Of a stretch of DNA of 64,000 nucleotides, positions 2,858-45,070 are shown piece after piece (position 1 is the first letter of the stretch; the number at the start of each line of letters is the position of its first letter). Origin of the DNA: Piromyces finnis finn. Taxonomy: Eukaryota > Fungi > Neocallimastigomycota. Made by a program: the position numbers and the translations under genes. The notes beneath the pieces are model-generated. The model saw only the letters and a program-made list of their open reading frames with translations. It was not told where the DNA came from and ran no database searches. The stretch is taken from assembly GCA_002104945.1 (NCBI GenBank), contig MCFH01000006.1, forward strand, positions 992,001 through 1,056,000. The letters run 5' to 3'.

Positions 2858-3071
2858 ATAATATTTATATATTTAAATAATACATAAAATAAAAATTATT
2901 TTTATTATAATTCTTCATATTTACTCTCATTTATTAATATGGAAAATATAGCAAATAATAAATATAAAAAGTAGAAATAAAAAAAATAAAATAAAATAAA
3001 TCTAATATTAATTAGATATATCCGTTTGAATATAATAATAAAGTTAACAACTCAAAGAAATAATTCCATCA

Positions 3072-3172
<101 letters not shown>

Positions 3173-3251
3173 TATTATTTTATATACTTGTAATTATTGA
3201 CATTCAAATTAATAATAATGATTTAAACGCCTATTCATTAATTAATTATAT

Positions 3252-3283
<32 letters not shown>

Positions 3284-3315
3284 AGTACAAATAAATATTT
3301 CTTTATTTTTTCAGT

Positions 3316-5011
3316 TTATGGACGTTGCTTAATTTTAAGCCAATCGTAAACAAGACGTTCTGCTAATATTCTTGACCAATTTTCACCGATCACAAATGCA
3401 TGAGGAATTCCTGTTTCATCTAAATGTAAATTATTATATTTAGTATATTCTGGTAACTTTTCTTTTAGTATTTCATAATGATCTTTAGTAGCCCATCCAT
3501 CATTTATACTATAAAAGAAGAAAAATTCATTCATGTGTTCATTAATAAAATCTACATGATCTTCAATTGATTTAATATCTTCACGTTCATATTTAGTTAA
3601 ATAAATAACATTATTTAATGCTTGAGAAGTATATTACAAAATTATAAATATATATATATATATATATTAAAATTAAAAATAATAAAATAATATTTAAAGT
3701 TTCTTTCCAAAATATACTATTAATAATAATAATAATATTTAATAAAAGGATATCTTAAAAGCTCGGCAGTAACTTCGCTTTCACCTTCACTTTGTTTTAC
3801 AACAGTTTTAACAAATGATTTTTTAAATGAAGTTGGTAGAAAATCAAGACCTTTTGTTATTATAGAGGCCATTTTTCTTTCAAAATCATGTTTTATAAAT
3901 CTAAAAGTGGAAATACCTCTTGGAGTTTTTTCAATCTCATGAATTGCTGGGAAAAGTAAAAATGATTTTGTAATTCCAGAATTTGGACGTTCTTCAAATA
4001 ACTATTTAATGTATAAAAATAGAAGTAATAAAATTATATGATGTATAATTAAATAAAATGAAATTTAAATAATTAATTTTTATAAAGTTGCTTGAAATTA
4101 TATTTACGTAATATAATATTAATTAAAACATAAAACATATATTTGATATAGCATTAAAAGAAATATATATTCATTAATATTACTCTTAGAACCATATAGG
4201 CACCAAGCGAATGGCCAATTAAATAAAATTTTGTATTTGGATGAGAATATTCCGGTTTTGCTTTTAATTTATCAAAGAATGCAATTTTTGATTCTATTTG
4301 TTGTTGATTTGAAAATAAAACATTATTACCTTCAAGTTTTCTATCAGTATGACCCATATGTTCAACTTTAGATTTATTGATTAATTATTTCAATTTATTA
4401 ATGTATTAAATAATAATATTTAGAGTATTATTGAAATTTATAAATTTTTGAATTTAAATTATAATAAAAATAAATAATAAGCAGATTTTAATAATATAAA
4501 TATAATTTAATATTTAATATTTTGTTTCAACCTTTAAATGTATAAAATAATGATAAATGTATTCTTACTTCCATAAATATCAATTTGTTTATCCCAAACA
4601 TCATATATTTGACCCATAAAACGACGATAATAATTTATAACACCAGGACTTCCTGTTTAATATTTTTTATTTATTATTTAAAAAAAAATACATAATTTTG
4701 AGATTCTCCATAAAATAATAATAAGTATTTTTAAAATAACACAAATTATTATTATATATCAATATATAAATTATTAATTTTTATAAAGCTCTATTGGATA
4801 TTTGAATAACAAAGAAACAAAGAAAATAAAAAAAATAGAAAATTGTATTACCTGGTACAATAATCACAACAGTCCTTGGTGAATCTTTTGGTATTTCTTT
4901 TGCTTTTATATAGAGAATCTTTGTTGAAGTACCATTTAAATCTAATATTTCTTCTTCACTATCAGTATAATCTAATTTTTTTTCATTTGATTCAGTCTTT
5001 TTTTCAGTCAT
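3316..5011 (-). CDS. LDAH: Lipid droplet-associated serine hydrolase (LDAH/DUF2305-like), multi-exon
   Basis: Manual splicing joins exon 5011-4852 (..VVIIVP-G) to an exon at about 4653-4570 (GSPGVINYYRRF). Later exons carry GHSLG and end YSINDGW...GIPHAFVI, stop at 3316. GT-AG boundaries were checked for the first introns only. Confidence 0.8.
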
Positions 5012-20572: not shown

Positions 20573-22870
20573 TTAACAGTTGGATGGCATACCACACCAG
20601 TTACCGTTTTCAACACCCCAGTCACCATCGGCATCAGTGTACCAGACATCACTGCAGGATGAACAGCACTTGTAACCTTGGGCAATGACATTAGCGTTAC
20701 ATTTAGCAGCTGGAGTAGAGGCTCCACCACAACCACACCATTGACCGTTTTCAACACCCCAGTCACCATCAGCATCAGTGTAAACAACTTGGCAGTTCTT
20801 GGAACAGCACTTGTAACCTTGGCTCATGATAGAAGCTGAGCACTTACCACTGCTACCAGTGTTGCTGTTGTTGTTACCACTGCTGCTACCACCGTTGGAG
20901 TAGCTACCTAAGTCGTAAATGGCAATAAGACCATTGGCAACCATAATTTCGGTTTGACCCCAGAATCTGTGGTAAGTGAAGGCTGGTGGGTTACCTCCGT
21001 TGAGGAAGTCTTCGACTTGAGCCCAATCTGGATCTTCCTTGTACTTTGGACGAATGTCAATGAAAGTAGCACCGCTCTTAATGTTGGCACCTTGAGCGTT
21101 CTTACCACTCCAGCCAGATGGAATGTAAGTTTCTTGACCGAAGTTGGCGTAGTCAAGACGTTCTTCGTAGGTAGCGTAACCAAGATCATCCTTGTAGTTT
21201 TCAAGGACTTCCATAACGTTAACAGCAAGAGAAAGACCTTCATCATCACCGTCCTTCATAGAAACCCACATTAAGGCCTTCATGATAGAGGCAAGAGTAC
21301 CAAGATCAATACCAGTGGCAGAAACAGTACCGTGGAGGGATCTGTTAAGGTTGCTCTTGTTGAAGTTGGAGGACTTCCATTCATCTGGATTACCAGACCA
21401 GGCTAAGTTAGTGGCGTGAATAACTTCGTTACCACTAATTTGAACATTGTCCTTAACCCACTTGGCCCAGTTTTGACAGACAAGTCCGGCTCTTTCATCA
21501 CCAGAAAGGTAGTACATGGAACAGACACGTTCCATACCCCAACCTTGCATACCAGTCCAGTTGTTGGATGGTGGGTCGTGGTAAACTGGTTGCCAGTCGT
21601 ACCACATACCGTAGAAGGAAGTAATGTCGCTGCTTGGTTGAGCGTAGTGACCTTGCCATGAGTTAGTGGCACCACCAGCAATACAACCTTCTGGAGTTTG
21701 TAACCATCTGAATAATTCTAATTGACGGTCCATGGAAGTAGCCCAATCCTTAGCACCAGTAGCAGACTTTGGCTTGAAAGCAGATTGAGTAGAAAGAATC
21801 CAGGCAGCTAATGGGGATTGGTAACCACTGTGAGTGTGGGAAGAACCAATTCTCCAAGACCAGTCACCTTGTAAACCTCCACCCCAGGCGAAGTACCAGG
21901 AGATAAGGTAGTGAGCTGAGTTCTTACCAGAACCAGCAGAACATCTGTCGTAACCAACACAGTTACCGATCTTCTTGAAGTATTTATCGTAGTGAGCGTA
22001 ACGTAAGTAATCACCAAGCTTAGAGGCTTTCTTGGCAACAGATGAAAGATCTTGTCCATCTTCATCAGCCCATAACCAACCGAAGTAAGCGGCTTGAATG
22101 GCACGAGCATCGGCATCTGGAGCAGCAGTGTATCTCCATTGCTTAGCGTAGGAGTTATCTAAGGTGAAAAGATCTAAGAAACCGTTCTTACCACCCCACT
22201 TCATGGTTTCCCAACATGGGTGTGGAACAGTCTTCCAGGCAGATTCTGAAGCACCACGTTGGAAGGTGTTAATGAAGGATGGCTTAGACTTACCATCACC
22301 TTGTTGACCGTAACCGTACCAGTTATCACCATCAATAATCCAGTGCATGGCGTAGATATCCCAGTTACCGTAGGCTTGGGAAAGTTCCTTGGCAATTGGA
22401 TCTTCACCAACAACACCGTTGACGAATTCGAGCTTGGCTGGGTAGTCTTCAATATCATCACTTTCTGGAGCATAGGTAGCTGGTGAGGAAGTGTTGTACT
22501 TGCTCATACCTGGTTGGTTCTTGCTGTCTGGAATTAAGTGCTTTTCTAAGTAGCTCCAGGCAGTTTCAACACCAGAGTAATCACCAGTAAGCTTACCGTT
22601 AACAGCTTCTAACCAAACCCAGAAGGAGTAGGTTTCAGAGACGGATTCGTGACCGTGATCTGGAGCTTCAACCATAAGAGTTTCAATAGAGTGGTATGGA
22701 ACGTTTTCTGGTGAGAAGTATTCAGATTGGTATGAACCATTACCAGTAATGATGTTGTAGTGGTCCATAGCACGTTCAGCGAACTTTTGAGAGGCACCAG
22801 AACGCTTCATTGGAGCGGCCATAACGGCAGAAGCACCAAGAAGAGCAATAGCAGATCTAATAGATGGCAT
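20573..22870 (-). CDS. cel48A: GH48 cellobiohydrolase with signal peptide and two C-terminal fungal dockerins (copy a)
   Basis: VEAPDHGHESVSETYSFW, INTFQRG, YAKQWRYTAAPDADAR, GGATNSW, YHRFWGQ; two QGYKCC...DADGDWGVENG.WCG dockerins; intronless. Confidence 0.97.
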   Translation of the reverse strand: MPSIRSAIALLGASAVMAAPMKRSGASQKFAERAMDHYNIITGNGSYQSEYFSPENVPYHSIETLMVEAPDHGHESVSETYSFWVWLEAVNGKLTGDYSGVETAWSYLEKHLIPDSKNQPGMSKYNTSSPATYAPESDDIEDYPAKLEFVNGVVGEDPIAKELSQAYGNWDIYAMHWIIDGDNWYGYGQQGDGKSKPSFINTFQRGASESAWKTVPHPCWETMKWGGKNGFLDLFTLDNSYAKQWRYTAAPDADARAIQAAYFGWLWADEDGQDLSSVAKKASKLGDYLRYAHYDKYFKKIGNCVGYDRCSAGSGKNSAHYLISWYFAWGGGLQGDWSWRIGSSHTHSGYQSPLAAWILSTQSAFKPKSATGAKDWATSMDRQLELFRWLQTPEGCIAGGATNSWQGHYAQPSSDITSFYGMWYDWQPVYHDPPSNNWTGMQGWGMERVCSMYYLSGDERAGLVCQNWAKWVKDNVQISGNEVIHATNLAWSGNPDEWKSSNFNKSNLNRSLHGTVSATGIDLGTLASIMKALMWVSMKDGDDEGLSLAVNVMEVLENYKDDLGYATYEERLDYANFGQETYIPSGWSGKNAQGANIKSGATFIDIRPKYKEDPDWAQVEDFLNGGNPPAFTYHRFWGQTEIMVANGLIAIYDLGSYSNGGSSSGNNNSNTGSSGKCSASIMSQGYKCCSKNCQVVYTDADGDWGVENGQWCGCGGASTPAAKCNANVIAQGYKCCSSCSDVWYTDADGDWGVENGNWCGMPSNC

Positions 22871-32606: not shown

Positions 32607-34904
32607 TTAACAGTTGGATGGCATACCACACCAGTTACCGTTTTCAACACCCCAGTCACCATCGGCATCAGTGTACCAGACATCACTGCAGGATGAACAG
32701 CACTTGTAACCTTGGGCAATGACATTAGCGTTACATTTAGCAGCTGGAGTAGAGGCTCCACCACAACCACACCATTGACCGTTTTCAACACCCCAGTCAC
32801 CATCAGCATCAGTGTAAACAACTTGGCAGTTCTTGGAACAGCACTTGTAACCTTGGCTCATGATAGAAGCTGAGCACTTACCACTGCTACCAGTGTTGCT
32901 GTTGTTGTTACCACTGCTGCTACCACCGTTGGAGTAGCTACCTAAGTCGTAAATGGCAATAAGACCATTGGCAACCATAATTTCGGTTTGACCCCAGAAT
33001 CTGTGGTAAGTGAAGGCTGGTGGGTTACCTCCGTTGAGGAAGTCTTCGACTTGAGCCCAATCTGGATCTTCCTTGTACTTTGGACGAATGTCAATGAAAG
33101 TAGCACCGCTCTTAATGTTGGCACCTTGAGCGTTCTTACCACTCCAGCCAGATGGAATGTAAGTTTCTTGACCGAAGTTGGCGTAGTCAAGACGTTCTTC
33201 GTAGGTAGCGTAACCAAGATCATCCTTGTAGTTTTCAAGGACTTCCATAACGTTAACAGCAAGAGAAAGACCTTCATCATCACCGTCCTTCATAGAAACC
33301 CACATTAAGGCCTTCATGATAGAGGCAAGAGTACCAAGATCAATACCAGTGGCAGAAACAGTACCGTGGAGGGATCTGTTAAGGTTGCTCTTGTTGAAGT
33401 TGGAGGACTTCCATTCATCTGGATTACCAGACCAGGCTAAGTTAGTGGCGTGAATAACTTCGTTACCACTAATTTGAACATTGTCCTTAACCCACTTGGC
33501 CCAGTTTTGACAGACAAGTCCGGCTCTTTCATCACCAGAAAGGTAGTACATGGAACAGACACGTTCCATACCCCAACCTTGCATACCAGTCCAGTTGTTG
33601 GATGGTGGGTCGTGGTAAACTGGTTGCCAGTCGTACCACATACCGTAGAAGGAAGTAATGTCGCTGCTTGGTTGAGCGTAGTGACCTTGCCATGAGTTAG
33701 TGGCACCACCAGCAATACAACCTTCTGGAGTTTGTAACCATCTGAATAATTCTAATTGACGGTCCATGGAAGTAGCCCAATCCTTAGCACCAGTAGCAGA
33801 CTTTGGCTTGAAAGCAGATTGAGTAGAAAGAATCCAGGCAGCTAATGGGGATTGGTAACCACTGTGAGTGTGGGAAGAACCAATTCTCCAAGACCAGTCA
33901 CCTTGTAAACCTCCACCCCAGGCGAAGTACCAGGAGATAAGGTAGTGAGCTGAGTTCTTACCAGAACCAGCAGAACATCTGTCGTAACCAACACAGTTAC
34001 CGATCTTCTTGAAGTATTTATCGTAGTGAGCGTAACGTAAGTAATCACCAAGCTTAGAGGCTTTCTTGGCAACAGATGAAAGATCTTGTCCATCTTCATC
34101 AGCCCATAACCAACCGAAGTAAGCGGCTTGAATGGCACGAGCATCGGCATCTGGAGCAGCAGTGTATCTCCATTGCTTAGCGTAGGAGTTATCTAAGGTG
34201 AAAAGATCTAAGAAACCGTTCTTACCACCCCACTTCATGGTTTCCCAACATGGGTGTGGAACAGTCTTCCAGGCAGATTCTGAAGCACCACGTTGGAAGG
34301 TGTTAATGAAGGATGGCTTAGACTTACCATCACCTTGTTGACCGTAACCGTACCAGTTATCACCATCAATAATCCAGTGCATGGCGTAGATATCCCAGTT
34401 ACCGTAGGCTTGGGAAAGTTCCTTGGCAATTGGATCTTCACCAACAACACCGTTGACGAATTCGAGCTTGGCTGGGTAGTCTTCAATATCATCACTTTCT
34501 GGAGCATAGGTAGCTGGTGAGGAAGTGTTGTACTTGCTCATACCTGGTTGGTTCTTGCTGTCTGGAATTAAGTGCTTTTCTAAGTAGCTCCAGGCAGTTT
34601 CAACACCAGAGTAATCACCAGTAAGCTTACCGTTAACAGCTTCTAACCAAACCCAGAAGGAGTAGGTTTCAGAGACGGATTCGTGACCGTGATCTGGAGC
34701 TTCAACCATAAGAGTTTCAATAGAGTGGTATGGAACGTTTTCTGGTGAGAAGTATTCAGATTGGTATGAACCATTACCAGTAATGATGTTGTAGTGGTCC
34801 ATAGCACGTTCAGCGAACTTTTGAGAGGCACCAGAACGCTTCATTGGAGCGGCCATAACGGCAGAAGCACCAAGAAGAGCAATAGCAGATCTAATAGATG
34901 GCAT
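32607..34904 (-). CDS. cel48A: GH48 cellobiohydrolase with two fungal dockerins (copy b)
   Basis: Same 765-aa translation as copy a; the alternative-frame ORFs inside the CDS are also the same. Confidence 0.97.
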   Translation of the reverse strand: MPSIRSAIALLGASAVMAAPMKRSGASQKFAERAMDHYNIITGNGSYQSEYFSPENVPYHSIETLMVEAPDHGHESVSETYSFWVWLEAVNGKLTGDYSGVETAWSYLEKHLIPDSKNQPGMSKYNTSSPATYAPESDDIEDYPAKLEFVNGVVGEDPIAKELSQAYGNWDIYAMHWIIDGDNWYGYGQQGDGKSKPSFINTFQRGASESAWKTVPHPCWETMKWGGKNGFLDLFTLDNSYAKQWRYTAAPDADARAIQAAYFGWLWADEDGQDLSSVAKKASKLGDYLRYAHYDKYFKKIGNCVGYDRCSAGSGKNSAHYLISWYFAWGGGLQGDWSWRIGSSHTHSGYQSPLAAWILSTQSAFKPKSATGAKDWATSMDRQLELFRWLQTPEGCIAGGATNSWQGHYAQPSSDITSFYGMWYDWQPVYHDPPSNNWTGMQGWGMERVCSMYYLSGDERAGLVCQNWAKWVKDNVQISGNEVIHATNLAWSGNPDEWKSSNFNKSNLNRSLHGTVSATGIDLGTLASIMKALMWVSMKDGDDEGLSLAVNVMEVLENYKDDLGYATYEERLDYANFGQETYIPSGWSGKNAQGANIKSGATFIDIRPKYKEDPDWAQVEDFLNGGNPPAFTYHRFWGQTEIMVANGLIAIYDLGSYSNGGSSSGNNNSNTGSSGKCSASIMSQGYKCCSKNCQVVYTDADGDWGVENGQWCGCGGASTPAAKCNANVIAQGYKCCSSCSDVWYTDADGDWGVENGNWCGMPSNC

Positions 34905-35264: not shown

Positions 35265-38200
35265 AAAAAAATTATGTAGTTTTTTAAGGGTAATACTCAA
35301 AACCTGTTTGCTTAAAATGATATTAATGCTATATTAAATAAAATTTAATTATTTATTATATAAACCAAATTTTTTTTATGAGATTATCTATACTAAAAAA
35401 AAAAAACAATAACAAACATGAATAAAGTATTAATAAAAAATGTGAAAAATATAAAATATTACTTCCAATATATTATTTTATTTTATTTAAAGTAAGATTG
35501 CAATAAATAATTAAATTAAAAAAAAAAATGAATAATTTTTATTAAGAAATAAGAAATATTAAATGATGTACATTATGAATGTTTCATTAATATTAAAAAT
35601 TTAATTAATTTTTTTTGAAACAATATAAATTTAATACATTTTCTATTATAGGTATAGAATTTCTTTTTTTATTTTAAAAAGGCGTATGGAAATAAGAATA
35701 TAATGTAAAAGGAATATTTTATAGTATAAAAAGTATTTAAAAATTAAAATGGACATTATAAAATATTTAAAATATAAAAATATAAATATAAAGATTTTTA
35801 AAAATATTTTAAGTTAGTAATTGATAATCATGGTGTGTAAGGTAATTTAATTGAAAAAAAAAGAAAAAAAAATGAAACAAATATTGATTAACATAAAAAA
35901 TTTAAAGAAAGCAAAAAAAAAAGTTTATTTATTATTATATCTCTTATTTTAAATTATAATTGTTACCCATAAATATATAAAATAATATTATATAAAGTAA
36001 AATAAATATAATTTTTTTGAGAAAATATAATGATTTTTAATTTAATAAATAATTAAATTAAATATATTAACTTTTAAATTTAAAAAAAAGAGAGGACAAA
36101 TATAATGAAAATCAATTGAATAAAATTCTTTTTATTTTATAACAAATCAAATGATATTTATTAATATATAAGAAAAAGAAGAAAATAAAAATTTTATATT
36201 CCATATTAAAAAATTAATATATTATAATAAAAAACTTCTACTCATACTGTTATTTTTTTGCTTTAATTATTGTTATGTTTTTAAATAGAAAAATTATATT
36301 TTGATAAATATTTAACCATTATTATAAAGTTTATTATTTTCATTGATTTTTCAATATTCAAAATATAGTGAAAATTTAAAATGAAAGAATAATGTAAGCC
36401 TTTTTTTTTTTTATTTTTTTTTAGAATAAGAGAACTTAATATGACGATCATACACATGTACAATACTAATGATTTTTTAATTAAAATAGGGATACTTTTT
36501 ATGATATATAAAATTTATCATATAATTCTATTTAAATTAAAGAATAAATTTATGTAAAAATTAATTTATATATTAATATATAATTAATATATAGCCCAAT
36601 AAATAAAAAAGTAAATATTAAAATATTGTAATTTAATTTATATTAAATTTTAGTGCCATTTAATGGAAGAAAACAAATGAATATCATTAATTCCACACTT
36701 TTTCTCTAGATATAAATTTATAATATTAAAAAAGATAATAACATATAATATATATAATATGGTGAATCTTTTATATCACTTTTTATATAATCTTAAATGT
36801 TCAAAATTGAAAAGTTTAAAAATTAACATATTTTTTATAATTATATATTATATTTTTTATATAAAATTAATATTAATAAGAACTTAGAGAAATTAATAAA
36901 AGTACTCCATTAAATATTAATTTTTTTTAAAAAAAGGGATGATAAATTTTCACCCAAAGTTATATTTATTTAAATTCTAAAAATAGTTTTATCTATATTA
37001 AATTATTAAATTAAAAATCACATCAATCAAAAACTATGAAAGATATTTTAAATAAATTATATTATATATAATTTTAAATTTATTTCTTATTATTATCATA
37101 CCTTACTATTCTTTATGATAATATTTTTTTTTATTGTTGAAAATTTAAAAATATAATTATAAAACTGAAGAATTATAATAATAAGATTAATACAATAACA
37201 ACGGATACTACTATTAATAATAATAATAACAATAATTGCAATAATAATACATTTTTTAATATTATTATTTAAAAGAATTATAAATATTATCATTTTATTA
37301 ATGTTTTATTTTTTTAAATAAATTTAATCATGAATCAATTATAAAAAATCTTATTCTTTGAATATACAATTTCTTCTTTTTATACATATAATATTTGTAA
37401 TTATAATAAATGTAATACATTGATAATTTATTTTATAATTATTATTAATTGGAATGGCCTAATTACTTTAATATTTAATTATAAAGAAGTATAATATTAA
37501 AATAAAAAATATGCCGTTATTATTAATATGACTACGGCAAAAAAGGATCTACAACCACAATATCATATTAAAATTTTATTTATCAATACATTACGACTTG
37601 TACATTTATAAAAATGTATGAGTTAATTACAATATATATTTTTTACTTTTTTTTTCGTTCTAAAAATCTTTAAATCTCTTAAAATAATATTTTATATTTT
37701 ATTCTTCTAAAAAAAAGATATTTTCGTATTTATATTTTATGATTTTTAGTAATTGGAGAATACTTTAACTTAATTATATTAATTTTGTTTCTAATTTAAA
37801 TTGTTTTCAACAATATTTCTTAATTTGAATAAATGTATATTCATATTATTTTTTTTCTTTCTTATAATTGAACTATAGTAATTTGGCAAAAAATTTTATT
37901 GAAAAATATATATTAGATTAGCCTTTACTACTATTAAAAAATTTAGTATAATTTATATAATTTATCTTAGATTATACAATAAAAATAGATTATACAATAA
38001 CAAAACAATATTTAAAGATTTCATTAGAGGGATTAATAGTTTCATTTTATAGTTATTATTACAAATAAAATTAGATACCTATTTCAATATAAATGGTTAA
38101 TATATTGAAAATATATTTTTTAACTTTATATTAATAGATTTACTATTAAATAACACATTCTAAAAAAATAATATCTTTTTTTTTTGTATTATTTATTTTA

Positions 38201-38509
38201 TTTATTTTATCCTAATCATTTAGACAAATTAATAATAATAATTAAGTAATATAAAAAACATAAAATATTCTTAAATCTTTCTATTTTATTAAATTACAAA
38301 TTATAATATATTTAATTTTCTAATAAAATTATATATAGAAATTATGAAGTTTTTTATTTTATTTTATTTTATTTTATTTTTAGCATATATTTAATGTTCT
38401 TTTTTGTTATTTTTTATTTCAATTTAAGGCTACAAAAGTATTTTTAATATAACTTTTTAATAATGTTGATAATGTACATTATTTATAAGATAATGTAGAT
38501 AATGTGGAT

Positions 38510-38725
38510 TGTTAGAATATGTGAAACGTTATGTCACATGTATTCAAATGTATTGAAATGTATTAAAACGTATTTGTATATATTGTATTTAATTATATGT
38601 TTAAGCCACAATGTAAATGTATAAATACATGTAGTTTGAGAAGAATGTAACGCAAGTAGTTCTTTATCATAAAATATATTAATAAAGTTGACATAATCAT
38701 AAATCCTAAATTACCACTCTTAATA
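38510..38725 (+). repeat. 5' LTR (216 bp)
   Basis: TGTTAGAAT...CTCTTAATA, identical to 43190-43405 by eye. Confidence 0.95.
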
Positions 38726-38739
38726 GATTAAGAGTCTCA
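38725..38739 (+). promoter_or_regulatory. Primer-binding site complementary to the tRNA-Lys(CUU) anticodon arm
   Basis: The reverse complement of GATTAAGAGTC is GACUCUUAAUC, the conserved anticodon stem-loop of eukaryotic tRNA-Lys(CUU) (recalled, not searched). Confidence 0.7.
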
Positions 38740-39498
38740 ATGACTCTCAAGAGAGAATCTCAATGACCCTCATTGACTCTCAAATGATTCTCTGAAAGAT
38801 GAATCAAACTGCCGGATACAGTATTATGTCAAAGGAGAAAACAGTAGGAAATTCTAACCATTACAATTAAATTATTTAATCTGAAATTATCTATGTTTGG
38901 TAAAACTGTTTTGAGATCTAGAATTTGAGATTTCAAAAATTTTGAAATTGAAATGGCAATCTAAAATTGAAAAACCACGAAATACCAAATAATCCAGTAA
39001 AATGAAAGAAAAACATTACCTGATATAAACAAAGTTTCCTTATACTAAAATAATATAGACAATTTTAAATTCCGAAAGCAAATTATTCTAAAATTGAATT
39101 TTGAATTTTTTAACTTTTAATTTAAATCTTTAAATTTAAAAATAAACAAAACAAATTGAACTCTAAATAATTTTGAACCAACATAAAATTTATTTTATTC
39201 AAATACAACCAATGCCTAAAACTCAGAAATAAATTAAAGTATTCAAAATTGAAAAGAATTAATTATTTTAGAAACTATTTATGAATAGATATTGTAAAAT
39301 TAAATTCAAAGTTAATAAAGTACAAATTCGAAATATAAATTTAGAATTAAATAAACAATAGAATTTCATTCTCAGTTTACCTTATTCACTACAAACAGTA
39401 TAAATTAACTAGTGAACTCTAAATTTATTTTATATAATTATTTACAATTGAGTTATTAAATTTCATCAAATATATTAATATTATAAATACTCCAAAGA

Positions 39499-40701
39499 AT
39501 GAGATTAAGAAGCAAAGTAATATATTTTTTAAATATTTTTTCGACAATTTTAATTCTACCATTGGTAATTGCTGAAAATCAAAAATGTCATGTAACCGAT
39601 GTCGGAACAGGTGTTTGCGTTAGAGAGGATCAATGTAAATTAAATGATAAACAAACTGGCAATGCTAAAGCATATGCAGGTTTTTGTACACATGACTCAG
39701 TTAATATTAAATGCTGTATAAAAGATGTCGATACACTTACAGATGGAACAGCTCTTCTAAATACAGGAAAATGTAAAAATATAAATGAAGATGACTGTTC
39801 AGAAGAATCTTACACGAGATATATGGACCAATGCCCAGGACCTAGTGTTATTCGACTATGCGTTCCAAATACAAATCAAAATAATGATCAATTAAAAGTA
39901 AGTGACAATATAATTAACATAATCAAAATTTTTGAAGGATGTGTATTAACTGCCTATTTAGATCCGGTTGGAGTATGGACTATTGGTTACGGTACTACCA
40001 GTGCTAACTATGATATTACTGGAACATATATCAACGAGGGCTTAACAATAGATGAAAAAACTGCAGAGAAATGGTTAAAACTTTCAATCGAAAAAAAATA
40101 TGGTCCTAATGTAAAATCTTTCAATTATAAATATAATTGGAATCAAAATGAATATGATGCATTATGTAGTTTTGCTTATAATGTTGGAAGTATTGATGGA
40201 TTAACTAATAATGGTCGGAGAACAAAGGAAGAAATTAATAAAAAGATTTTAGAATACAACAAAGGATATGTAAACGGTGTTTTAAAACCTCTTCCAGGAT
40301 TAGTAAGAAGAAGAGCAGCTGAGGCTGCACTATTTGCAGGTTGTGACTATTCAACCTATATCAATTTTGGTAAAACATATACTAAAATTGGTATAGAAAT
40401 TTGTGATCATATTGGTGAATTTTATATTAAAAAGTTATGCGATCTTGGTTATAAAGTTGACATTAGTAAAGTCAGTATATCCAAAATACCAATTATCTCT
40501 AACAATACCGATATAACTAATATTTCTAATGACATTAATATAGTTGATAGTGAATCTTGTGGTTATTATATTGTTGATAACCAACTTAATGACGAACAAG
40601 AAGATTCAAACGGAACTGTAAACTTCAAATATATTTCTCTCGCAAATGTATTTATTATTTTAATGTCAGTAATGTTTTGGCAAATAAACATTGTATATTA
40701 G
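39499..40701 (+). CDS. Secreted, probably membrane-anchored GH24 (T4/phage-type) lysozyme with N-terminal Cys-rich domain
   Basis: Signal peptide; Cys-rich module; FEGCVLTAYLDPVGVWTIGYGTT with E, D(+9), T(+6) as in T4 lysozyme E11/D20/T26; YDALCSFAYNVG; GLVRRRAAEAALF; hydrophobic C-terminus; intronless. Confidence 0.92.
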   Translation: MRLRSKVIYFLNIFSTILILPLVIAENQKCHVTDVGTGVCVREDQCKLNDKQTGNAKAYAGFCTHDSVNIKCCIKDVDTLTDGTALLNTGKCKNINEDDCSEESYTRYMDQCPGPSVIRLCVPNTNQNNDQLKVSDNIINIIKIFEGCVLTAYLDPVGVWTIGYGTTSANYDITGTYINEGLTIDEKTAEKWLKLSIEKKYGPNVKSFNYKYNWNQNEYDALCSFAYNVGSIDGLTNNGRRTKEEINKKILEYNKGYVNGVLKPLPGLVRRRAAEAALFAGCDYSTYINFGKTYTKIGIEICDHIGEFYIKKLCDLGYKVDISKVSISKIPIISNNTDITNISNDINIVDSESCGYYIVDNQLNDEQEDSNGTVNFKYISLANVFIILMSVMFWQINIVY

Positions 40702-41664
40702 AATTCTCCTAATTTACTCAATTTATTAAATTTATTAATTTGATTTTGATCTACTCATTATGTCAATTTACATTCATTATCATTTAAAAATCCATATATT
40801 CAATTATGTAAATATTCATAAACATACATACACCTACAAACATTCATTTTATTTTTAAAAGAATTAGTTTTATTAACATTCATAAAATAGCATTATCGTT
40901 ATTAAAAGCATACATATTTATTTCAAGTAAATAAATTGTTTGTGAAATATTCGAATATTTTAACTACTACTATTTTAATGAGATAATATCCTTTCCGCCA
41001 TAGGGGAAAGAATTGAAGAAAATAATTAATTTTTACAATTAGAAACAATAATTAGAATAATTAAACATTATTTGATAAGTTTATATAAAATATCCTATTA
41101 CAATGAAATTATACAAAAAGAATTGAACTATCCTTGTGAAAATGTCAAACAACTTCATCATGATAATATCACTCAAAATTAGTATATATTATTTAATCCA
41201 GTATACAACTCTTTGAATTGATTTACTATAACAACACATTAAGATAATATATTTAGCCTCAAAAGCATTATTAAAGTTATTGCTAATCTACAAAGCAAAT
41301 ATATTTCTGGTCAAATGCTCATCCCGTAGGCAATTATTAGTTATTGCTAATCTACAAAGCATATATTTTAAATGAGGTAATTTATTAAAGTTAGAAATGC
41401 TTAGCGTGAAATGAGCATATTCTACACATATATATTTAGAATGACCTAGCGTGAAATGGGTGCATTCAATAATATTTTAACAACTTATCATGATTTAACT
41501 TAGCGTGAAATGAGTTAAATTCATAGATATTTATTAATGATGGTTCAAGATCTACATATATTTAATTTGGTCCCATCAATAAAATGTAGCACCTTTATAG
41601 AAAGGGCTCCATAAATTTAGATGACATTGATTCATCATATATATTTATTACCAACATTCAAGAA

Positions 41665-41980
41665 TGTTGTGACGCCGTTTTAAAATTAAATTTACGGTGA
41701 TTTTAGAAACCCTCATATACATATCGCCACTTTAAACGTAGTGAGTGATCGCCGACCTATTAGCTGACATTCTAATTAACCGAGCCGACTTCGATATTGT
41801 TTAGAAGAACTTTATTCTCTTCAACAATCGATACTTTAAATGTCATTATCTTATCATATTAACTTGTTATAATCTTACTGGTATATTTACTTATTTTAAT
41901 TTGAAGTAAAGAAATAAATACTTGAAGTATATTTTAATTGTTTGATTGATTTTAATAATCATTTCATTAATTTCACAACA
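41665..41980. mobile_element. Probable solo LTR of a different family nested inside the element
   Basis: 316 bp bounded by perfect inverted termini TGTTGTGA...TCACAACA; no matching TSD (aagaa vs cttaa). Confidence 0.5.
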
Positions 41981-42576
41981 CTTAAAAGGATTAGTAATTG
42001 AGAAAAATGAATGAAAACATTAGAATATGTTATTTATTTTAATATAGGCATTAAAATTTATCGTATATGTTATGAAAATTTATTCATTATTATGAAAATT
42101 TGATGCAAAATGAATGAAATTTTATGAAATTTAAATTTCTCATTTTCAAATCTAAATATTTATTACTAAACATCTAGATTTGAGGGGGAAGTAGTGAATA
42201 TACGAAATTTAAAATTCAAGATAATAATTTTTGTTTCTAGTTAAACATTGGAAATAACTAAAACATTGCATAGAAACTAAGGCTTAATAAATAGAATGAA
42301 TTGAAATTCAAATGTAAAAATCTATAAGATTCAATATTCAATATGTAAAAATGAAAAGAACAAAATTTCAAATACAAAGTAAAATATTCTTAAATATTAT
42401 AAGAATAATTAATCAATACAAAAGGCATAAAAGGAAGGAAAAACACCTAAAAGAAAATGTTAAAATTCAATATACATAAACTAAATAACTATTAAGAATT
42501 TAATTAAAATTTTACCATTATTAATTAGTATTTACAAATAGATTGAAATACAATTATGCTAATATTCTAAAGAAAA

Positions 42577-42890
42577 TTGTAGTTATAAGGACATAAAACC
42601 AGAGAGTTATCCATAGGTTGTCCGAAGAACGTAAAACCAAGAAGATTAACCATAGGTTGTTAAGAGAACGTAAAACCAAAAGGAGTTATCCATATGTGTT
42701 GTCATAAGGACGTAAAATCAAAGGTTAACCATGAGTTGTTAAGAAAACGTAAAACCAAAGAGGTAAACCATGCGTTGTCATAAGGACGTAAAATCAAAGA
42801 GATAAACCATGTGTTGTCTATAATTCTGTGTAAATCTCAGAGAGATTACCAATATAGTTTATAGGATAATGTAAAACCGGAAGGGTTTTC
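42577..42890. repeat. Degenerate tandem array, about 8 units of 38-42 bp
   Basis: Approximate consensus GTTGTYAKAAGRACGTAAAACCAARGAGWTAACCAT; the GTAAAA anchor recurs at 42593, 42631, 42671, 42712, 42750, 42789, 42831 and 42871. Confidence 0.85.
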
Positions 42891-43189
42891 AATCCTTAAT
42901 GGATGGTATAACAATTTATGAATATCCAATCCAAATTTTAAACTTTAATACTACCCAATTATACAAAGGTTTTCAGTTTATCCATAAAAACGAAGTTATA
43001 GGGTAATATTTAAATTCTTTAAAGCAATTAGTGAATAATATATGTGAAATATTTTAAATTCCAGTTAATGAAATATAAAAATTTTAAACATTAGATTTAG
43101 TTTATAGTTAATAGTTTAGAAATAATAAAATGCACATATTCACCAGCAAACCAAATTTTACTTAGTAGAAAATTAGGTTTGAGGGGGAA

Positions 43190-43405
43190 TGTTAGAATAT
43201 GTGAAACGTTATGTCACATGTATTCAAATGTATTGAAATGTATTAAAACGTATTTGTATATATTGTATTTAATTATATGTTTAAGCCACAATGTAAATGT
43301 ATAAATACATGTAGTTTGAGAAGAATGTAACGCAAGTAGTTCTTTATCATAAAATATATTAATAAAGTTGACATAATCATAAATCCTAAATTACCACTCT
43401 TAATA
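43190..43405 (+). repeat. 3' LTR (216 bp)
   Basis: Preceded by the PPT, followed by the TSD TGGAT. Confidence 0.95.
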
Positions 43406-43502
43406 TGGATAATGGAAGATTGGAAATATTTAAAAAAATAAATTAAAATCTTTTCAAAATTAGTTATATATTGTTACTATAAATGGATAAATTGCTTATA
43501 AA

Positions 43503-43652
43503 TGTTTAGAATATGTGAAACGTATGTCACATGTATTGAAGTGTATTCAAACGTATTATAATGTATTATATTTTATTAGGTGATTAAATCATAATGTAAT
43601 AGAATGTAACAATAGTAGTTCTTTATCATAAATTATATTAATAAAGTTTGAC
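43503..43652 (+). mobile_element. Older, diverged LTR of the same family
   Basis: tgtttagaatatgtgaaacg-tatgtcacatgtatt...agtagttctttatcataaa.tatattaataaagt aligns to the 216-bp LTR with indels. Confidence 0.8.
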
Positions 43653-44407
43653 TCATGTTTTTTATGGTTAATGCTATATAACATAAAAGTTTGTGGTTCA
43701 TAGCAATTCTTATTTTATCTTAACCATTAAAAGTGTGACCATTTGAATAAATAGAATTAGGAAAAATAAAATCTTAAGTATGTGGTTCATAACAATTTTA
43801 ATTTTATTTTCATAAAATATCATTATTAATATAACTATTTAAATAATATAGATAAGAAAAAAAAAAAAATTATTCAAATTCATATATTTTTATAAGTTTA
43901 TTATTATATAATGTGTATTGGTATTAATAAAATTAATTTTATATATCAATTTTTAAAAATAAATTTATGCTAATTTTAGATGCTAAAATATTAAAAATAA
44001 TCTATATAATATTTATATCTTTTGTTTATTGTCTGAAATATTTACAAGTATTTTTGTTAAAAATAATATTTTACCTTTTTATTTTATATAAATATGTTAA
44101 ATATTTGTATAAAATCTGGCTTTAGAGAATTATTTCCAATAAATTTAGTAATTATTATGGATATAGTTTTTAATTCTTCACATACATTATTTACAGCAAA
44201 TGGCCATCCAGAATTCTTTAAAAGATAATTTCCTTACACTATCTAATATCGAGAAGGATATTATTTATTAAATACTTTCTTTTCTCAATTAAAATTTTTA
44301 AAACATTGTATTGTATACCTGAAAGAATACACAAAGCATGAAAGTTAATATTGCTTTTTAATATTTGTTGCATATACTTTAAAAAAATTTTTTTAAAAGT
44401 AAATTTT

Positions 44408-44463
44408 AATGAACACGATTGAATAAAAAACAGGTATAATATATTCTAGTAATTTTAATTAAA
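44408..44463 (-). repeat. Decayed fragment of the LINE 3' UTR
   Basis: gaataaaaaacaggtataatatattctagtaattttaattaaa resembles 12660-12703 gaataaaaattgggtataatgtattctagtaattttaattaaa. Confidence 0.6.
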
Positions 44464-45070
44464 ATAAACCAAAATATGAATTTATATATATATTGATTCA
44501 AGAGAGGTTACAAATATATGATCATATGTATTAAAACATTTAACATTTAAAGTTGATTTATAATTATCAACTATTTATAATTGGAGGTATTAATATTATT
44601 TATTATAGATTTCATTTAATTTAAAAATTATATTTTCTTTAATAAATGTAAATATTTTCATTTTTATTTTTAATTATTTGCCAATATTTATTATAATTAA
44701 AATTTTATAACTTTTTTACGACTAATTATACAATTGAAGAAATAAATAAAAAATAATTTTCTCCTTTGGTGTAAATTAAATATAAATAACAGAGTATCAT
44801 TTTTTATTGTATGTTTTATTTAGATTGGTAGTGATGAATGCTAGCTTAATATGTATAATATCTTTTATATAAATAATTATTAATGAAATTATATAATAAA
44901 GCTTTTATTTCTTATTTTTTTTCAAAAATCATTATTTTACTAATAAAAAAGCAATTTAATTTTCTACTAAATAAATAAAGTTCTTTATAATAATTTTATT
45001 TAAAATGTAAAAGCTATTTTTTATTTTTTGAAAAATAAAAAAAAAAAAAGGAATTTTAATAATTCGAGTG

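Follow-up and report, generated by a model that had tools for sequence, protein, structure and literature searches.

Structure of the element

Positions 38510-43405 of the window (the whole 64,000-nt stretch of Piromyces finnis DNA that was analysed) hold a 4.9 kb LTR element. Its features, together with the duplicated target site on either side, are as follows:

38505-38509, + strand: target-site duplication TGGAT, left copy (repeated at 43406-43410)
38510-38725, + strand: 5' LTR, 216 bp (TGTTAG...TTAATA), identical to the 3' LTR at 216 of 216 positions
38726-38739, + strand: primer-binding site GATTAAGAGTCTCA, adjoining the 5' LTR, complementary to the tRNA-Lys(CUU) anticodon stem-loop (nt 27-40)
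38726-39498, + strand: non-coding leader, 773 nt, 10 upstream ATGs
39499-40701, + strand: cargo ORF, 400 aa (GH24 muramidase part at nt 39925-40323)
40702-43180, + strand: non-coding 3' backbone, common to all subfamilies
43181-43189, + strand: polypurine tract GAGGGGGAA, adjoining the 3' LTR
43190-43405, + strand: 3' LTR, identical to the 5' LTR (216/216)
43406-43410, + strand: target-site duplication TGGAT, right copy

The cis signals reported in the initial annotation (two identical 216-bp LTRs, the TGGAT duplication, a primer-binding site and a polypurine tract) were all recovered at these positions. LTR boundaries were set by the target duplications, and the termini are TG...TA in every family member, unlike the canonical TG...CA; the RT-bearing copia families of the same genome likewise have LTRs ending in ...TA or ...AA, and the non-CA terminus is therefore a trait of the lineage. 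Motif reading of the 5' LTR gave a candidate promoter signal (TATAAATA, 38620-38627) and a candidate poly(A) signal (AATAAA, 38681-38686), both of putative function. The primer-binding site is complementary at 14 of 14 nt to nt 27-40 of the tRNA-Lys(CTT) gene of the same genome (L069:1485-1558, minus strand, sequence read directly), and this pairing with the anticodon stem-loop implies a putative copia-style half-tRNA primer.

The initial ~229 nt of the leader are common to all subfamilies, while in most copies the 3' backbone is 88-96% conserved (interior nt 2007-4464); it contains a conserved G+C-rich motif (41722-41789), an internal motif resembling a polypurine tract (42182-42192) and 39-nt tandem repeats (42606-42837). 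The earlier statement that the interior has no gag, reverse transcriptase or integrase also held: no gag/pol was found in the element, either by tblastn with copia and LINE polyproteins that P. finnis itself encodes or by inspection of all stop-free six-frame segments, and the cargo ORF is the only one of at least 60 aa within 37500-44500.

The lysozyme cargo

The 400-aa product comprises a signal peptide (aa 1-25), a Cys-rich module (aa 30-121), a GH24 muramidase domain (aa 143-275), a linker and a C-terminal hydrophobic tail (aa 378-399), with only two hydrophobic segments, one at each end. Its previous description as an intact, secreted lysozyme of GH24, a phage/bacterial muramidase family, agrees with the Pfam match to PF00959 Phage_lysozyme (residues 143-275, E 1.4e-25; 90.5 bits vs. 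a cut-off of 22.3), with a PHROG endolysin match (E 4.6e-42) and with the 55–64% identity of the domain to bacterial lysins; annotated relatives are named "lysozyme-like protein [Piromyces finnis]". Aligned with fungal and bacterial relatives, residues E146, D155, and T161 show no variation, and we take them to be the catalytic Glu/Asp/Thr, equivalent to E11, D20, and T26 of T4 lysozyme. We infer that the product is probably a muramidase, secreted or surface-anchored, acting on gut bacteria (the isolate presumably stems from horse gut and not from the rumen).

Copies and mobility of the family

The LTR has at least 42 matches at 96–100% identity in the P. finnis genome, which holds dozens of family members (hereafter vehicles) plus solo LTRs bearing target duplications of their own. 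Exact 5' junctions (n = 22) and exact 3' junctions (n = 28, counted genome-wide as exact matches to TTGAGGGGGAA joined to TGTTAGAATA) could be paired around interiors of 2.1–5.04 kb, none of them exceeding 5.04 kb, and the family is therefore non-autonomous.

Further lysozyme-bearing copies with different target duplications, which the initial annotation had proposed to look for, do exist: the genome contains six full copies including the one in the window, all in unrelated flanks. One of them (C43) was read on its 5' side only; in the five fully read copies the LTR pairs are 99.1–100% identical, and the four copies outside the window have the duplications TAAAC, GTTTC, CCCTC, and ATTAT. Three of the six are identical. 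A whole-genome PF00959 scan returned the six vehicle copies and one weak hit (27 bits) outside the family, i.e., strong GH24 genes of P. finnis are found only as retrotransposon cargo.

We give an almost negligible probability to the explanation that a resident gene lies between two LTRs by chance, or that segmental duplication or a redundant assembly, not retrotransposition, generated the copies. The interiors of C189 and C182 are 100% identical, which alone is compatible with a duplicated assembly, but the LTRs of every fully read copy are immediately bordered by a perfect 5-bp duplication peculiar to that copy, no relationship is seen among their 1-kb flanks, and GH24 outside the family amounts to the single weak hit. 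The distinct duplications and unrelated flanks of the fully read copies contradict such an origin, including the case, named earlier as a possible refutation, of LTRs that merely flank a resident gene.

Candidate helpers

The primer site, the polypurine tract and the LTR termini of the vehicle recur in autonomous Ty1/copia elements of P. finnis; in one family, encoding 1542 aa, the shared LTR ends are TGTTAGAA...TTAATA. The sequence in common with these candidate helpers is limited to 6–10 terminal LTR nucleotides, the primer site and the polypurine region, and no autonomous element with the same LTR body or leader was found in the genome. Compared with the originally postulated autonomous copia-like helper of the same LTR and primer-binding site, the candidates agree in the primer-binding site, polypurine tract and LTR termini but not in the LTR body.

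A slot with alternative cargos

The cargo lies in a slot between the conserved leader and the conserved 2.4-kb 3' backbone, and its contents differ by subfamily: the GH24 lysozyme (six copies), colicin-M-like secreted proteins, or a decayed copy of seryl-tRNA synthetase (SerRS). The initial annotation had overlooked that the slot is shared, the lysozyme being one of several alternative contents.

The colicin-M-like proteins have the same N- and C-terminal modules as the lysozyme. Their domain was modelled with a pLDDT of 87.6, and structural searches place its predicted fold with colicin M, syringacin M, PaeM, and pectocin M2: relatives of colicin M fill the top 12 places in Foldseek (best E 1.5e-3), and in VIA-align the ten best rows all belong either to colicin M-type bacteriocins or to the BtpeA toxin domain (Z 5.6–7.7, 131–141 residues aligned in the best rows), after which Z drops to 4.1. 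Atlas feature hits were Colicin_M, DUF3289, and DUF6402 (scores 0.85–0.87), while a Pfam profile search of this cargo returned no match. Based on the fold and on a D-x-[Y/W]-D-F motif, which we take to be the colicin M signature, the domain is predicted to be colicin-M-like. With an omega of ~0.75, these copies are uninformative on selection.

The majority subfamily is the one with SerRS, whose decayed copy is present in 11 vehicles and whose fragments match solved SerRS structures (E 1.8e-13 and 2.7e-9). The match at the host SerRS locus (C1:662903-663152) is broken into two collinear pieces by a gap of 91 nt; the vehicle copy runs through without interruption, which suggests that the gap is an intron apparently absent from the vehicle copy.

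The signal peptide and C-terminal hydrophobic tail resemble a type-I membrane glycoprotein, and the terminal modules are conserved across vehicle cargo types, so that the ORF could be read as an env-like accessory protein of the element itself (signal peptide, ectodomain, C-terminal anchor) that aids its own spread and not the host; LTR elements with additional ORFs have been described from rotifers (PMC5408684). We consider this very improbable, as the element has no gag/pol to profit from an envelope and the enzymatic domains would act on bacterial peptidoglycan or its precursor rather than on fungal walls. Moreover, ordinary genes unconnected with LTRs (GH25, Phage_lysozyme2, peptidase-like) carry the same N-terminal module, as does, in another fungus, a colicin-M-like gene that is not part of a vehicle.

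Divergence, probable expression and occurrence in another organism

Selection was assessed by comparing the window copy with C35, i.e., two lineages. Divergence in the ORF is 8.5% vs. 9.0% in the next 1 kb, with one indel (in-frame) vs. 10, and the ORF has no stop (P ~0.002 under the local mutation spectrum). Nonsynonymous and synonymous changes number 90:12 (expected nonsynonymous share 0.75, p = 6e-4), although divergence is mosaic (LTR 1–3%, ORF block 9%), which shows recombination, able to inflate apparent amino-acid change. The three identical lysozyme copies are too young to be informative. Taken on the sequence comparison, the lysozyme gene family is apparently under selection.

Contigs of runs X1, X2, and X4, taken as RNA by guess, cover 38830-39453 and 40036-40632 with 0–1 mismatch, with the flanks near zero; their depth rises ~3-fold at the ORF start, the ORF standing above the leader. 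Contigs of homologues start 38–85 nt before the ATG. Contigs cannot reveal transcript ends, but the depth step and these starts suggest an internal transcript start near the ORF, and a leader with 10 upstream ATGs means that translation needs one.

In another organism, a Logan contig (L070) contains a lysozyme homologue with an open frame, 77% identical at the nucleotide level in the GH24 region and followed by DNA homologous to the vehicle backbone. Judging from this contig, the linkage of cargo and backbone is present there too, a recurrence that the initial annotation had missed.

These data bear on the possibility that the vehicle is real and the ORF a neutral passenger, intact only through recent capture and amplification, with no protein made and no benefit to the host. 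Many insertions are indeed very young (three copies 100% identical, LTR pairs 99–100%), the ORF diverges at the rate of adjacent non-coding DNA, a dead SerRS copy is propagated by the same vehicle in 11 members, and the upstream ATGs burden the leader. Neutrality nevertheless seems unlikely in view of the frame kept free of stops across 8.5% divergence and the indel contrast with the neighbouring 1 kb, the catalytic positions invariant even with bacterial relatives included, the open-frame homologue on the same backbone in another organism, and the greater depth of probable-RNA contigs over the ORF than over the leader.

Interpretation and significance

We interpret 38510-43405 as a recently inserted member of a LARD-like LTR family, non-autonomous and derived from Ty1/copia, that acts as a gene vehicle, with a probability of roughly 80% for the explanation as a whole, i.e., vehicle, mobilisation in trans, cargo swapping and a secreted antibacterial product. 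Under this explanation, autonomous copia elements sharing the vehicle's termini, primer site and polypurine tract would act in trans to package, reverse-transcribe and integrate its RNA, cargo would be acquired and swapped via template switching between co-packaged RNAs, and the protein would be translated from a shorter mRNA starting just upstream of the ORF. Retrotransposition would amplify and diversify a muramidase used against gut bacteria.

A more far-reaching reading, which we put forward only tentatively, is that of a long-lived, host-beneficial retroelement cassette system, in which antibacterial genes (GH24 muramidase, colicin-M-like, peptidase-like) are swapped by template switching and amplified by retrotransposition, the errors of reverse transcription supplying variants on which positive selection acts. 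If true, the family would do in nature what synthetic Ty1-based in-vivo evolution does by design, and the vehicle itself would survive across species thanks to selection on its cargo.

An expansion of GH24 in Piromyces has already been recorded (PMC8778642), and the vehicle gives it a concrete mechanism, showing a route by which a gene gained through horizontal transfer can multiply and diversify. It also points to an anti-bacterial repertoire of herbivore-gut fungi, in which Cys modules are combined with GH24, GH25, Phage_lysozyme2, or colicin-M-like domains. As a natural vehicle with mapped primer site, polypurine tract and LTRs, it is a possible genetic tool for anaerobic fungi, for which we know of no such tools.

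Comparison with known systems

With LARDs and other non-autonomous LTR retrotransposons the vehicle shares LTRs, primer site, polypurine tract, target duplications, many copies, solo LTRs, the lack of gag/pol and a presumed mobilisation in trans. The interior of classical LARDs is non-coding, whereas the vehicle has a defined slot with intact secreted-protein genes that differ by subfamily, and no autonomous partner of the same LTR body was found in the genome. In Drosophila copia and yeast Ty5-type elements, priming is by an internal part of the initiator Met tRNA; the primer site of the vehicle similarly pairs with the anticodon stem-loop region and not with the 3' CCA end, but its tRNA is Lys(CUU).

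Gene capture by LTR retroelements is known chiefly from plant gene fragments and retroviral oncogenes, as exemplified by maize Bs1 and by helper-dependent, acutely transforming retroviruses with v-onc genes. As in these, coding capacity has been replaced by RNA-captured cellular sequence (the SerRS cargo apparently without the intron of the host gene) and a helper is needed. Plant transduction cases mostly involve gene fragments, whereas the lysozyme is a complete, frame-maintained gene of bacterial/phage type in six copies, and the alternative cargos share N- and C-terminal modules. The lysozyme passes the Pfam cut-off of GH24 T4-type lysozymes with invariant residues at catalytic positions and 55–64% identity to bacterial lysins, but, in contrast to GH24 lysozymes and to colicin M-type, lipid II-degrading bacteriocins, both antibacterial-type cargos come joined to Cys-rich modules of fungal kind and end in a hydrophobic tail.

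In fungi, Starship elements are cargo-carrying DNA elements. ToxB in Pyrenophora, located on a Helitron-like element, is a transposon-amplified effector (bioRxiv 10.1101/2025.11.13.688278). As in both, transposon carriage raises the copy number of a gene whose secreted product matters ecologically, but the vehicle is an RNA-copied LTR element and not a DNA element, and its products are directed at bacteria, not plants. The vehicle family is a form of LTR-mediated gene transduction.

Structure of the element

A repeat search of positions 37500-44500 returned a single long direct repeat (38506-38725 and 43186-43405), within which the following features, all of the same copia-type element, could be delimited:

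38510-38725, + strand: 5' LTR, 216 bp, TGTTAG...TTAATA, bounds set by sequence reading
38726-38739, + strand: primer-binding site GATTAAGAGTCTCA, adjoining the 5' LTR
39499-40701, + strand: cargo ORF of 400 aa; no other ORF reaches 60 aa
43181-43189, + strand: polypurine tract GAGGGGGAA, adjoining the 3' LTR
43190-43405, + strand: 3' LTR, 216 bp, TGTTAG...TTAATA, bounds set by sequence reading

The two LTRs are identical (216/216) and both are directly flanked on their outer side by TGGAT; the structural hallmarks of an LTR retrotransposon are present except for the canonical CA terminus, the LTR ending in TA. Residues 143-275 of the encoded protein match Pfam Phage_lysozyme (E 1.4e-25), the ORF also matches a PHROG endolysin (E 4.6e-42), and exactly two hydrophobic segments were found, one N-terminal and signal-like, the other at the extreme C-terminus. 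Neither gag nor pol or integrase remnants were found in the element; tblastn and tblastx comparisons of copia and LINE polyproteins, together with all cargo ORFs, against its non-ORF parts and against the majority subfamily of the same family gave no match, and an Rfam search gave nothing above noise. The initial annotation had described paired identical LTRs with target duplication, primer site and polypurine tract around an intact GH24 lysozyme as sole long ORF, in an interior lacking recognisable gag, reverse transcriptase or integrase, and each of these points was borne out.

Several further features were observed in and around the element. The G+C-rich block at 41722-41789 (ATCGCCACT...AGTGAGTGATCGCCGAC...CCGAGCCGAC) is kept in all subfamilies and in a Logan contig from another organism (L070, 2781-2919), which makes it a candidate cis signal, e.g., a packaging site; we claim no RNA structure for it, as compensatory pairs number just 3 in 5 sequences. 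The shared 3' backbone contains a unit of 39-40 nt repeated five times in tandem (42606-42837, 60-75% alike). In the stretch from 42174 onward, a second polypurine-like motif (TTGAGGGGGAA, 42182-42192) is followed by sequence loosely resembling an LTR start, and contig depth in one probable RNA run (X4) jumps there from about 0 to > 1,000, which may be the remnant of a nested LTR or the place where an abundant 3' transcript begins. Approximately 100 bp downstream of the element lies part of a degenerate LTR from a related family (43507-43648; 70% identity overall, patches of 79-92%), suggesting repeated insertion into an AT-rich intergenic spot. Elsewhere in the window, two cellulosomal GH48-CBM10 genes (20573-22870 and 32607-34904, minus strand) lie 12 kb apart, with LINE-like ORFs (RVT_1 and endonuclease) between them; both encode 765 aa and their Pfam scores are identical.

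Genome-wide distribution and lysozyme-bearing copies

In the 56.46 Mb assembly (232 contigs), at least 42 of 140 candidate LTR matches had 96-100% identity, and a junction pattern search recovered 22 exact LTR/primer-site and 28 exact polypurine/LTR junctions. Paired junctions delimit elements with interiors of 2.1-5.04 kb and none longer, which makes the family non-autonomous throughout. Solo LTRs with 5-bp duplications of their own are numerous (e.g., GGATT, CATTT, AAAAC, ATTCC). Judged from these sequences, the retrotransposon family is, or recently was, active. An array of three family LTRs on contig C200 (349990-351028), the first two 412 bp apart, each preceded by the polypurine tract and with an identical right flank, could represent a tandem or a recombinant arrangement.

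A translated genome search found six full-length lysozyme ORFs, all inside family members. Full copies were pieced together, the C200 copy with a 63-nt gap, while C43 and the copies with alternative cargos were read in part.

Lysozyme-bearing copies in the P. finnis genome (contig; amino acid identity to the C189 lysozyme; target duplication; LTR pair identity)
C189 (copy in the window); reference; TGGAT; 100%
C182; 100%; TAAAC; 100%
C200; 100%; GTTTC; 99.1%
C43; 96%; read on the 5' side only
C35; 83%; CCCTC; 100%
C222; 82%; ATTAT; 99.5%

The 1-kb flanks are unrelated among the five fully read lysozyme copies. Further lysozyme-bearing insertions, as had been expected, number five, of which the four fully read have different target duplications (TAAAC, GTTTC, CCCTC and ATTAT), and since all six genes lie inside family members, the possibility that no other copy carries the gene is excluded. 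A whole-genome scan with PF00959 returned these six lysozymes and one weak 27-bit match on C186, nothing else. The lysozyme gene has moved together with the vehicle. That GH24 counts are high in Piromyces had been reported earlier, with no mechanism given (PMC8778642). The C200 lysozyme copy (520711-522280) differs from C189 and C182 by approximately 570 extra bases in its 3' backbone and is otherwise identical to them.

A cargo slot with alternative cargos

Alignment of the interior against the genome showed that its first ~229 nt and last 2.4 kb are common to all subfamilies, while the middle differs. Copies on C46, C192 and C157 hold ORFs of 432-434 aa in this slot, whose products resemble the lysozyme protein over the N-terminal ~139 residues (79% identical) and in the C-terminal tail (83%) and differ in the centre; a 514-aa ORF on C151 has the same tail. 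The different central domain of the three copies has 51 relatives among 1.84 billion proteins, fused elsewhere to chitin-binding or ricin-lectin modules, and its AlphaFold model reached a pLDDT of 87.6 with an alignment of these relatives versus 35 from the single sequence. The top 12 Foldseek hits were colicin M, syringacin M, PaeM, pectocin M2 and the BtpeA toxin domain, VIA-align gave Z scores of 5.6-7.7 before a fall to 4.1, and an Atlas feature search also pointed to the colicin M type. On this structural prediction, the domain is probably a colicin-M-like, lipid II-directed antibacterial domain. A PHROGs search with the alternative cargos gave no match, and an Atlas search with the N-terminal Cys-rich region no usable one.

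In a sister LTR family (C152, C208), the ORF has 482 aa, the same module plan and a weak PPPDE-peptidase match. In the majority subfamily, the slot holds a copy of cytoplasmic seryl-tRNA synthetase (SerRS) in sense orientation and with its frame broken, pieces of which match solved SerRS structures (E 1.8e-13 and 2.7e-9); this copy is present in 11 vehicles, including one at C112:503883-504510 (L011:1-628). The host SerRS gene (C1:662903-663152) is matched in two collinear pieces separated by 91 nt, suggesting an intron that the vehicle copy lacks, and hence capture from spliced RNA.

The N-terminal Cys-rich module also heads genes outside LTR elements (C184:236173-248934, C146:154449-156847 and C180:303213-303860), where its partners are GH25 (six tandem paralogues, two broken), Phage_lysozyme2 and a papain-like domain, and a non-vehicle colicin-M-like gene with this module occurs in another AT-rich, fungal-like metagenomic contig. 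Its presence on such ordinary genes places the vehicle cargos in a wider family of secreted, putatively antibacterial enzymes.

Priming and candidate helpers

The 14-nt primer site is the exact complement of positions 27-40, the anticodon stem-loop, of tRNA-Lys(CTT), as read in a gene of the same genome located by pattern search and ARAGORN. Internal "half-tRNA" priming is known from Drosophila copia; the P. finnis element would be primed in the same manner, with tRNA-Lys. A 9-nt palindrome (ACTCTTAAT-AG-ATTAAGAGT, 38716-38735) spans the LTR/primer-site border, with the consequence that the LTR end mimics the tRNA sequence paired by the primer site. Tf1-like self-priming through this palindrome was judged less likely, because the complementary arm lies just 2 nt from the primer site, because the latter matches tRNA-Lys(CUU) over 14 nt, and because it is kept in copia families that have no such palindrome at their LTR ends. 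We favour tRNA-Lys priming, in which the hairpin may still matter.

At least 150 RVT_2 matches were found in the genome, with open frames of up to about 1,830 aa. The primer site adjoins the LTRs of reverse transcriptase-bearing copia families with LTR ends ...CATAAAA and ...ATTAATA. One family (1542 aa) shares both LTR termini (TGTTAGAA...TTAATA), primer site and polypurine tract with the element, another about 55 nt around the polypurine tract, and the CATAAAA family about 35 nt from the primer site onward; the copia element within the window has a different polypurine/LTR junction. A blastn comparison with the 5' and 3' ends of four such families found junction motifs only, with no shared LTR body or leader. 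The anticipated autonomous partner with the same LTR was not found among these families; the candidate helpers agree with the element in primer site, polypurine region or LTR termini, and their LTR bodies and leaders are unrelated to its own. The vehicle would be mobilised in trans by one of the copia families sharing these junction motifs.

Signs of maintenance of the lysozyme frame

Selection was assessed between the C189 and C35 copies, i.e., two lineages only; the three identical lysozyme copies hold no information on it. Divergence between the two is 1-3% in the LTRs, 4% in the leader, 8.5% in the ORF, 9.0% in the next 1 kb and 2.9% in the rest, a mosaic best read as recombination among lineages. 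Divergence of the ORF has thus kept pace with that of the neighbouring non-coding DNA. The ORF contains one in-frame 3-nt indel and no stop, compared with 10 indels in the next 1 kb. With a substitution spectrum taken from the element's non-coding parts, 6.1% of random changes would create a stop, giving P of about 0.002 for none in 102 changes. Of these changes, 90 are nonsynonymous and 12 synonymous, where a nonsynonymous share of 0.746 would be expected (p = 6e-4); omega by the Nei-Gojobori method is about 2.6, and the catalytic positions E146, D155 and T161 are invariant in the alignment. These are signs of frame maintenance together with an excess of amino acid change, to which recombination may contribute. 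The decayed SerRS cargo exemplifies how an unselected cargo looks in the same vehicle family. Among the colicin-M-like copies, dN/dS is about 0.75, an uninformative value, with the differences concentrated in a swapped tail.

Expression

With 5,801 nt as query, four small runs of the same organism, whose type was guessed to be RNA, contain 27-66% of the element's words, with depth near zero in the immediate flanks and in the hundreds to thousands within the element. Contigs from these probable RNA runs cover 38830-39453, 39357-39595 and 40036-40632 at 0-1 mismatch, depth increases ~3-fold at the start of the lysozyme ORF, and joints at 39477>40713 and 39365>40603 indicate that alternative-cargo versions are also present. 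A true metatranscriptome contains the 3' backbone and LTR. As the leader has 10 upstream ATGs and contigs of a homologue start 38-85 nt ahead of the ATG, the lysozyme would be translated from a shorter mRNA with an internal start, predicted to begin some 40-100 nt ahead of 39499 and to end in the 3' LTR, beside a genomic RNA running from LTR to LTR.

Relatives beyond this genome

A 658-aa protein (P0003) from two Logan-assembled runs shares the signal, Cys module, GH24 domain, post-domain motif and C-terminal tail with the lysozyme and has chitin-binding and NlpC/P60 domains in addition. On its 3.2-kb contig the GH24 region is 77% identical to the C189 copy, and the sequence downstream of the stop is homologous to the vehicle backbone (window 41451-41792 at 66%, 42118-42230 at 75%); the linkage of cargo and backbone therefore extends beyond the P. 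finnis assembly. Outside fungi, the nearest GH24 domains share 55-64% identity and are accompanied by choline-binding or SH3 modules, and one cluster among them is named as Clostridium lysozyme, which fits a bacterial or phage origin of the domain.

Comparison with known systems

The initial annotation knew of no description of the arrangement, and our search of the literature, in which few subscription journals are covered, likewise yielded no account of LTR elements with cargo in anaerobic fungi. The combination for which we found no description comprises a helper-dependent vehicle family with a slot for interchangeable intact antibacterial genes, the residence on that vehicle of the sole copies of a horizontally derived gene family, and signs of frame maintenance with excess amino acid change in the cargo. 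In terms of known systems, the element functions as a LARD that also performs gene transduction of the retroviral type.
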